A stretch of DNA of 64,000 bases from Phyllobates terribilis (GCF_046119375.1 NW_027362767.1:182218001-182282000); one strand, 5' to 3'. Positions 28,901 to 31,900 are shown, numbered from the stretch's first letter. Made by a program: numbers and translations. The notes: generated by a model not told the origin, from the sequence alone.

Positions 28901-31900
28901 GTTTTTGTGCGTGCTGAGATGCAGTAATGTGTTCCCCTCCTCAGGGCCCGGAAAAAAATATAAAGTCAAGTTTGATAACAAGGGGAAGAGCCTGCTGTCC
29001 GGGAACCACATAGCGTACGACTACCACCCTTCACCCGAAAAACTGTTTGTAGGAAGCAGAGTGGTGGCCAAGTACAAGGACGGGAACCAAGTGTGGCTGT
29101 ATGCCGGCATCGTAGCCGAGCCCCCCAACAACAAGAATAAGATGAGGTAACCAAAGAATCCATCTATTTCCAGAACTGCAACATTTTTAGTTATGGGAAG
29201 ACATGTGCGTCACACACTTGTGGTCTCCAACCTGCGTCTCCCCGGCTCTCGGGGTGTCAGAGCATGCTGGGAGCTGTCATTGTCTATCTGCTGGCAAGCT
29301 ACAGATGGCAACCACTGCTTCAAAGGGTTATTCTCCTCTTCATAGTCTGGCATTGTCGGATAGTGCTTGTAATAACAAGCACTTTTGCAATTTACTGTGG
29401 GTTAAAATTTTGAGCTGTTCTTGAGATATTAACACTTTTTTCTTTTGTATATAGCTCGTTGCCTAGGTGACCGACCACCGCTGCTATCAAGCAGTAAACA
29501 AAAGTGTTAATATCTTTGGAACGGCTGCAAATTTTAATTAGCAGTAAATTGCAAAATTGCTTGTTTTCACAAGCTCTAGCTGACCATATCGATTTATGAA
29601 CCTGGGTTTAACCCTTTAAATATTTGGCACCTTGTATGGTTTGATTTATACCTTTGTCAGGTTCTATATGATGATAAAACATCAACTACTGTTTCTTAGG
29701 TTTCTGATCTTCTTTGATGATGGCTACGCCTCTTATGTCACGCAGTCGGAGCTGTACCCTGTCTGCAGACCACGTGAGTGTTGACCTAAGCCAAATCCAC
29801 ATGTGGCAGATTTGCTGCCAATTTTACCTGTGGCTGATGAGTTTTTTTCTTCTTTTTTTTTTGTAGTGGCTAAATCTTGGGAGGACATAGAAGATGTGTC
29901 GTGTCGGGACTTCATTGAGGAATATGTCACCGCATACCCAAACCGTCCAATGGTTTTACTCAAGAGCGGGCAGATGATCAAGACGGAGTGGGAGGGCACT
30001 TGGTGGAAATCCAAGGTGGAGGAAGTGGACGGCAGCCTGGTGAAGATCTTATTTCTGGTAAGGAGATATGTTTCTATCCTTCTCACCCCACTGTATCTGG
30101 AGCACACGGATAGCATTTAACGCCTACCCGACGTGTGAAGTGCATGTACATCGCTTGTCCAGATCTTCCTCCATTACCCTTTCTATTTCAGGATGATAAG
30201 CGGTGCGAATGGATCTACCGAGGATCCACTCGTCTAGAGCCCATGTTCAGCATGAAGACGTCCACCGCTACCACTCAGGAGAAGAAACAGGCGGGACAGC
30301 AGAGGACGCGCCCCAACGTGGGTGAGTGTTTTGTCTTTTTCGTGTACGGTATTGATTTCCACGTATGACTAATTCCTCCCCCCATGTGTCAGGTGCTGTG
30401 CGGAGCAAAGGGCCGGTGGTGCAGTACACCCACGACCTCACCGGAAGCGAGTCTCCATTTAAGCCCACGGAGCCTTCCTCCCCTCAGTCAATACCGTCGC
30501 CACAGCTCATCGACACAGAGTAAGTCCGATCGCTCACATGTTAACCGTCTCCACTCATCCTGATGGGCGCCATATACATAGGGAATATTTTTTTCTCTCT
30601 ATAGAAAAGTCTAGTTGACAGGTTAGCATGCGAGTGCTTGGAGGTATACAGCGGGCGATACTCCTGACCTATGTGTCGTCTGGTCGTCTCAGATATCCCG
30701 CCTACAGTTTTCTGCCAGTTTCTGGTTCGGATGTAGGCTTAGATAAGTGTCTTCATATTTATGACTCCTGTTTGTTTCTGGTTTCAGCTCAGACAGCCAA
30801 CAGGCGCAGTCTAAGAAGCAAGTGGCCAAGAAAAGCACGTCGTTCCGTCCAGGATCGGTGGGCTCCGGACAGTCATCCCCCATACCCATCGAGCCCGTCA
30901 CTGGATTGCGCCCCGTTCTTCCAAACCAACTCAACCAGACCTTCCAGCCCATCCAGCAGATCCAAGCCATCCAGCAGATCCAGCCCATCCAGCAGATCCA
31001 GCCCATCCAGCAGATCCAGCCCATCCAGCAGATCCAGCCCATCCAGCAAATGCAACCCATACAGCAATTGCAACCCATACAGCAAATGCAACCCATCCAG
31101 CAGATCCAACCCATCCAGCAGATTCAGCAGATCCAGCAAATTCAGCAGATCCAACCCATCCAGCAGATCCAACAGATCCAGCAGATCCAAACCATTCAGA
31201 CAATCCAAGCGATTCAGACTTTTCCCACCATTCAGGCCATTCAGACGCTTCATCCCAATCACACCATCCAAGCCATACAGATGGCTCAGCCCAACAGGTG
31301 AGCTGCTTTCCACTAACGGACCTCCAATATGGCTTCCAGGTGTTGGATATTGATCTTTTTCCCTCCTGTCTCCGTACAGGTTTATTACCACCAATCCCAC
31401 GTTCCAGATAATCCAGACCAGCCAAATGCCGACAGAGATAAGTTACAGGGCCCCGAGGGAAAAACTCTTCTACCTACCTCACGTGTGCAACCCCAACTGC
31501 TTGTCGCGAGTCCGAGCCATTTCCCACCGGGGCAAGAACCCCATGTTGGTCCCTCTCCTTTATGATTTCCGGCGGATGACTGCAAGGAGGCGCGTGAACC
31601 GCAAGATGGGGTTCCACGTGATCTACAAAACGCCGTGTGGGCTGAGCCTGCGAACCATGCCTGAAATCGAACGCTACATCTTCGAGTCCAAGTGCGACAA
31701 ACTGTATTTAGAAATGTTCTGCCTGGACCCCTACGTGTTGGTGGACCGCAAGTTCCAGCCTCAGAAGCCCTTTTATTACATCCCAGACATCACGTACGGC
31801 AAGGAGGATGTGCCCCTGTCCTGCGTTAACGAGATAGACAGGACACCCCCTCCGCAGGTAGACTACAGCAAAGAGCGCATCCCCGGCCGAGGAGTGTTCA

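Follow-up and report, generated by a model that had tools for sequence, protein, structure and literature searches.

A periodic Gln-rich tract between the Tudor domains and the MBD of frog SETDB1, and its apparent enlargement in a hyloid frog

The SETDB1 locus and its repeat exon

The window, a stretch of 64,000 nucleotides from a hyloid (nobleobatrachian) frog, holds, as read from sequence matches, a SETDB1 gene in its entirety (Table 1). SETDB1 is the main enzyme silencing transposons through H3K9 methylation. Searches by tblastn with frog SETDB1 proteins yield 19 collinear pieces at 22924-39386, with identities of ~85% to Leptodactylus fuscus (P0158) and Eleutherodactylus coqui (P0161) and of 73-79% to Xenopus, Aquarana, Mixophyes, Pelodytes, Bombina and the caecilian Microcaecilia. 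The triple Tudor region of SETDB1 is present upstream of the tract described below, Pfam assigning DUF5604 (2e-15) and Tudor_5 (1.1e-12) to 28875-29147 and Tudor_4 (1.5e-14 and 5.1e-10) to 29785-30365; MBD (6.3e-19) and then Pre-SET (3.3e-06) follow downstream at 31354-31959, the Pre-SET score of 28.0 bits falling below the cut-off of 29.1 because the domain is truncated by the exon border. Identity of the MBD exon to the SETDB1 of Pelodytes is 84%. The bifurcated SET and post-SET regions are recognized from the full-length tblastn collinearity, the pieces being matched singly, and the separate SET pieces received no Pfam score in the exon-by-exon search; all searches were made exon by exon or with database proteins. 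The first-pass annotation had placed an insert between the Tudor domains and the MBD of SETDB1, and both gene and position are confirmed by Pfam on the flanking exons and by the ~85% orthologue identity.

Table 1. Features of the SETDB1 locus and of its surroundings in the window
Feature	Coordinates	Strand	Remarks
Whole SETDB1 gene	22924-39389	+	19 tblastn-matched exon pieces, N-terminus to stop codon
Upstream linker exon	30393-30521	+	sequence read and tblastn; phase-compatible with repeat exon; protein ends PQLIDT
SETDB1 repeat exon	30788-31297	+	510 nt; AG/GT borders, open frame; bears motif 1 and repeat tract
VAKKSTS, H3K9-like histone-mimic motif 1	30822-30842	+	exact match, in repeat exon
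Whole (x-hydrophobic-Gln)n tract	30939-31289	+	39 triplets, 117 aa, zero charged residues
Species-private (Pro/Gln)-Ile-Gln block	30948-31190	+	18-bp unit CCCATCCAGCAGATCCAG; gap-filling in alignment with 12 frog orthologues
Old degenerate 3' core	31191-31289	+	aligned; orthologous to tract of other neobatrachian frogs
Downstream exon	31380-31958	+	last tract-like triplets TFQ IIQ TSQ, then MBD and pre-SET start; gtagga follows
Minisatellite arrays	8206-10625, 11974-12464, 20766-21281, 24193-25818, 52649-54174, 61102-63956		GC-rich save AT-rich 61102-63956

The repeat exon has the acceptor tttcag/C (the slash marking the exon border), preceded by a polypyrimidine tract, and the donor CAG/gtgagc, and both of its ends are matched in tblastn by the Leptodactylus and Eleutherodactylus SETDB1 proteins. 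Translated from 30789 it is stop-free and ends MAQPN. The upstream exon ends ...ATCGACACAGA/gtaagt, its open codon being completed by the single leading base of the repeat exon, and at the 3' junction the trailing AG joins the G at 31380 in an Arg codon. With splice borders intact, split codons joining both neighbours and no stop, the earlier description of a phase-consistent 510-nt exon stands.

Within the tract, x-[Ile/Met/Leu/Phe]-Gln accounts for 35/39 triplets, in agreement with the ~35 triplets (~105 aa) of x-Ile-Gln first noticed, the full tract being 117 aa. Position 1 of the 39 triplets is Gln in 16, Pro in 11, Thr in 7, Ala in 4 and Met in 1; position 2 is Ile in 31, Phe, Met and Leu in 2 each and another residue in 2; and position 3 is Gln in 36, His in 2 and Pro in 1. 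At 30943-31182 Tandem Repeats Finder detects 13.3 copies of an 18-bp period, with 89% matches. The modal 18-bp unit CCCATCCAGCAGATCCAG has 8 matches at no more than 2 mismatches in a search of the window (chance expectation 0.02), all of them in the repeat exon; a dispersed or transposon-derived origin of the repeat was rejected, the unit being confined to this exon within the window.

The same exon carries motif 1, which is invariant in every frog orthologue aligned and from which the tract starts ~30 residues downstream. In human SETDB1 motif 1 is trimethylated at K490 and bound by the HP1 chromodomain; it lies within a ~200-aa unstructured Tudor-MBD region and is reported to be conserved from fly to human (10.1101/2025.01.21.634156). 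A function for the Tudor-MBD linker has thus come to light only recently, by way of this mimic motif.

Tandem arrays are found elsewhere in the window. There are six minisatellite arrays with units of 30-34 bp, in 15 to 90 copies with 91-99% matches, and it is striking that the unit length is common to them and the unit sequences differ. One of these, a 34-bp unit in 48 copies (to 25818), begins exactly at the end of the tblastn match of the small SETDB1 exon at 24086-24193, which itself matches its orthologues at only 61-64%. Two further arrays have 71-bp units, at 48720-50922 (30.7 copies) and 17371-17802 (6.1 copies), with 96-97% matches and differing consensus. Long open frames occur on both strands in 59-6340, at 2107-3741 and 3597-4802 on the minus strand and at 59-1279 on the plus strand, and probably represent a retroelement upstream of SETDB1.

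Distribution in frogs, the old core and the private block

Pelodytes ibericus SETDB1 (P0001) was the best full-length match to the MBD exon in an exhaustive representative search, and relatives were then gathered by word search with its linker region and by cluster look-ups. SETDB1 was obtained in this way from >20 anuran species and from four salamanders, a caecilian, a lungfish, reptiles, birds and mammals. For comparison the segment that begins at KKSTSF and runs to the conserved Y-K/R-A-P was taken. An uncharged tract with a third-position hydrophobic period is found at the same site in all anuran SETDB1 retrieved (>20 species), with hydrophobic register counts of 0/3/24 in Xenopus laevis, 23/1/4 in X. 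tropicalis, 0/4/20 in Rhinophrynus, 57/0/6 in Ascaphus, 2/16/3 in Bombina, 17/2/6 in Aquarana and 2/39/1 in this window. Pleurodeles, Ambystoma, Microcaecilia, Protopterus, Crocodylus, Emydura and Excalfactoria show no register bias and 0-2 x-hydrophobic-Gln triplets, and the non-frog linkers, from KKSTSF to YRAP, are 64-101 aa and rich in Pro/Ala/Ser/Thr. Absence outside frogs is judged from the SETDB1 of salamanders, the caecilian, the lungfish, reptiles and the bird. The first-pass annotation described a Pro/Ala/Ser-rich linker without the repeat in human SETDB1; among the sequences compared, the reptile and bird orthologues lack the tract by both register and triplet counts.

The tract is thus placed by these sequences as an anuran character, found in Ascaphus and Bombina, which branch earliest among living frogs, and absent from both other amphibian orders. 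An insert invariant across amphibians, the contrary case entertained at the outset, is not what is found: the salamanders and the caecilian lack the tract and the frog tracts vary. The period is kept in Bombina bombina (P0168) as (Thr-hydrophobic-Gly/Ser/Asn)n with only 2 Gln in the segment, and the conserved property may therefore be the period and not glutamine. Several SETDB1 or SETDB1-like genes with differing tracts lie on one chromosome in Mixophyes fleayi (P0002, P0164, P0165) and in Pseudophryne corroboree (P0166, P0167), one Pseudophryne copy having just 3 x-hydrophobic-Gln triplets, which suggests tandem duplication of SETDB1 in the myobatrachoid lineage.

MAFFT alignment of the repeat exon with 12 frog orthologues shows the same flanks and a common 3' core (e.g. 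with Leptodactylus), and ~70-75 residues that are present in this window only. The array of 18-bp PIQQIQ units is likewise seen only here among the compared species, with 35 canonical x-hydrophobic-Gln triplets vs no more than 22 in any other. From KKSTSF to the exon end the protein measures 156 aa, and the following exon adds ~26 aa ahead of YRAP. At 30984-31037 there are three identical 18-bp units, and at 30948-31037 five lie within one mismatch; one variant stretch of the private block occupies 31047-31091, and divergence from the modal unit climbs steadily toward the 3' end. Together these features support an old 3' part joined to a young 5' array of 18-bp units. The proposal of old edges with recent 18-bp expansion at the 5' end is borne out by the core common to neobatrachians and the near-identical 5' units, and most of the private block is itself not brand new, as its many unit-specific substitutions show. 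The suggestion of an insert of about 105 aa in this SETDB1 needs division: the tract is real and coding, but it is not new in the species, all sampled anurans having one, and ~70-75 aa are private.

The codons of the tract vary in a manner that supports translation with some constraint, the unit differences being mostly synonymous. Of the single-base differences from ATC/CAG at triplet positions 2 and 3 in the private block, 12 are synonymous and 4 non-synonymous; over the whole tract the figures are 23 and 14. With a neutral expectation of 18-28% synonymous, the binomial p is ~1e-4 to 1e-9, the counts not being independent events, and the excess is overstated because variant units were co-amplified. 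Lys, Glu and Arg are absent from the 117 residues, though Gln codons are one step away from theirs.

Composition and possible role of the tract

AlphaFold2 applied to the repeat exon alone, as a single sequence with no alignment, gives a mean pLDDT of 49.7, a pTM of 0.13 and no secondary structure, which fits a disordered linker, a prediction of this kind being a weak basis. The mean hydropathy of the tract is -0.42. No Pfam family is found on the repeat exon, by which other known repeat families were ruled out; a calmodulin-binding IQ motif (IQxxxRGxxxR) was rejected as well, the tract being without Arg/Lys and the exon without a Pfam match.

The tract is probably best regarded as a translated spacer, flexible, uncharged and rich in Gln, with constraint on its composition and period but not on its length, enlarged here by slippage. 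Two layers are superimposed. A periodic uncharged segment would have arisen in the frog stem lineage once salamanders had split off, and been maintained across Anura by compositional constraint; a gain of ~70-75 residues, recent and private to the species or lineage, would have followed at the 5' edge of this older segment, where the 18-bp (Pro-Ile-Gln-Gln-Ile-Gln) unit multiplied by slippage or unequal exchange. Such a spacer could be weakly sticky, and the extra copies found here would be nearly neutral, of loosely constrained length and without new function.

A second reading, possible yet unlikely, makes the tract a self-association module, prion-like or condensate-forming, so that the expansion would raise the clustering valency of SETDB1 at heterochromatin. 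A prion-like Q/N-rich domain is marked by at least 30 Q/N per 80 residues, by scarce prolines and by a capacity for self-templating aggregation; the best 80-aa stretch contains 43 Q+N and 26 aliphatic/aromatic residues with no charge; the hydrophobic period is kept and charge avoided throughout Anura, and the synonymous excess points to constraint at the protein level. The same 80 residues hold 10 Pro, however, and in the expanded block Pro recurs at about every sixth residue, which disfavours long beta-zippers; AlphaFold2 predicts no structure; and frog tracts ranging from ~30 to ~250 aa with very different units speak against a tuned assembly domain. A literature search found no report of such behaviour for frog SETDB1. 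A three-copy complex prediction with exon residues 46-169 scored 0.00, was run without controls, and is neutral on self-association.

It is likewise unlikely that stem frogs gained a selected periodic module beside the HP1-binding mimic motif, acting by self-association or through a frog-specific partner. If such a module exists, the repeated expansions in this hyloid, Ascaphus, Pelobatoidea and Hyperolius would tune heterochromatin or transposon silencing lineage by lineage. Against the spacer reading itself, the persistence of the pattern for >200 million years, even with Gln replaced in Bombina, suggests a role more specific than a passive one.

Inclusion in the messenger, and comparison with known systems

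The X. laevis entry Q6INA9/AAH72374 (Swiss-Prot; an accession type for full-length cDNA clones) contains the orthologous tract, and the orthologous segment is therefore present in mature mRNA; the curated RefSeq proteins of X. laevis and X. tropicalis contain it also. Word searches with the P0001 linker, the repeat exon and the MBD exon found no transcript or protein fragment from this species, the MBD-exon search for junction-crossing same-species fragments giving a best identity of 82-85%. Inclusion of the private block in the mRNA of this species is inferred from the orthologues and the codon pattern. It is very unlikely that the repeat is removed as an exitron or through an alternative upstream donor, which would make the expansion invisible to the protein. 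Many CAG acceptor-like sites occur in the tract, GT dinucleotides lie upstream at 30809-30915, and the exon is divisible by three in length; yet there are zero GT dinucleotides in 30939-31297, and so no splice donor inside the tract, while the frame is open over 117 aa and in phase with the next exon, the unit differences are mostly synonymous and the Xenopus cDNA-derived protein keeps its tract. Skipping of the whole exon is unlikely since it would delete the conserved motif 1. In favour of removal by splicing, Pelodytes ibericus has two annotated isoforms (P0154 and P0001; 1426 and 1290 aa) that are set apart by 136 aa lying within the repeat and over the exon junction; the gap could reflect alternative splicing within the repeat or collapse in transcript assembly. 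It is also very unlikely that the copy number comes from mis-assembly, or from an uncommon allele in the animal sequenced, and is no feature of the species. Near-identical 18-bp units, of which there are three to five, can be miscounted or vary between alleles, and the window is rich in tandem arrays; but perfect repetition extends over only 54 bp, and unit-specific substitutions in the rest of the private block anchor an assembly.

No published description of the tract was found in a full-text literature search, and a Bombina pachypus paper mentions SETDB1 for its expression only. The expansion seen here is apparently the longest, by canonical triplets, of an apparently undescribed anuran feature. 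The tract has long been visible in public entries such as that of Xenopus in Swiss-Prot, and the observation is a modest comparative one with no new mechanism; low-complexity linkers are well known to grow in single lineages, and the species-specific expansion itself is an ordinary slippage product. What gives it weight is a tract that is frog-only among the vertebrates sampled, has been lengthened several times independently, and has kept its register and its lack of charge from the base of Anura onward. The frogs thereby offer a natural length series for asking if SETDB1-HP1 feedback responds to the length of the linker or to its Gln/Ile valency.

Segments of similar composition occur outside SETDB1. 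When the repeat exon by itself was the query of a word search, only compositional look-alikes were returned: bacterial response-regulator Q-linkers and a few eukaryotic Q-rich proteins, together with two mammal-like fragments that match a short part of the exon. Bacterial response regulators (PF00072) and other proteins with (QPIQ/QPVQ)n tracts between domains share the composition and an apparent linker role but are unrelated to SETDB1, the E-values of 1e-8 to 1e-4 being obtained on low-complexity sequence and not indicating homology. Metagenomic response regulators (P0272-P0290, 257-292 aa) carry long QPIQ/QPVQ/QTIQ tracts of similar composition and period after the receiver domain. Sp1-type activation domains are likewise Gln-rich and uncharged, with bulky hydrophobics spaced among the glutamines; they show no sequence relationship to the tract and there is no Pfam match, and SETDB1, unlike an activator, is a repressor enzyme.

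Within SETDB1 itself, the salamander, caecilian, lungfish, reptile and bird proteins agree with the window in domain order, in motif 1 and in the end of the linker (..Q-x-R-Y/F ... Y-K/R-A-P). The anuran proteins (X. laevis Q6INA9, P0309; P0158; P0161) agree further in gene, exon, flanks including PNRF, tract and 3' core, and the linker of the window is of the anuran type, with an uncharged periodic tract between RP(I/V)LPNQ and PNRF and flanks that align to 12 orthologues. The nearest hyloids differ in that their whole KKSTSF-to-YRAP stretch is only 108-109 aa. The closest parallels are the expansions in other frogs, which occupy the same SETDB1 site and are, as here, Gln-rich, uncharged and made of tandem units in a three-residue register. 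Ascaphus truei has an independent expansion of VGAPQQFQQ in ~27 copies within a 299-aa linker; the linkers of Pelodytes, Spea and Pelobates measure 245-251 aa (Pelodytes 251, Spea 245), with the 9-aa units PNQTIHTFQ and GQTIQAIQT; and Hyperolius has a 204-aa linker with HQVLQ/HQAPQ units. Because these units, of 9 or 5 aa vs 6 aa in the window, and the lineages that bear them both differ, the enlargements are parallel.
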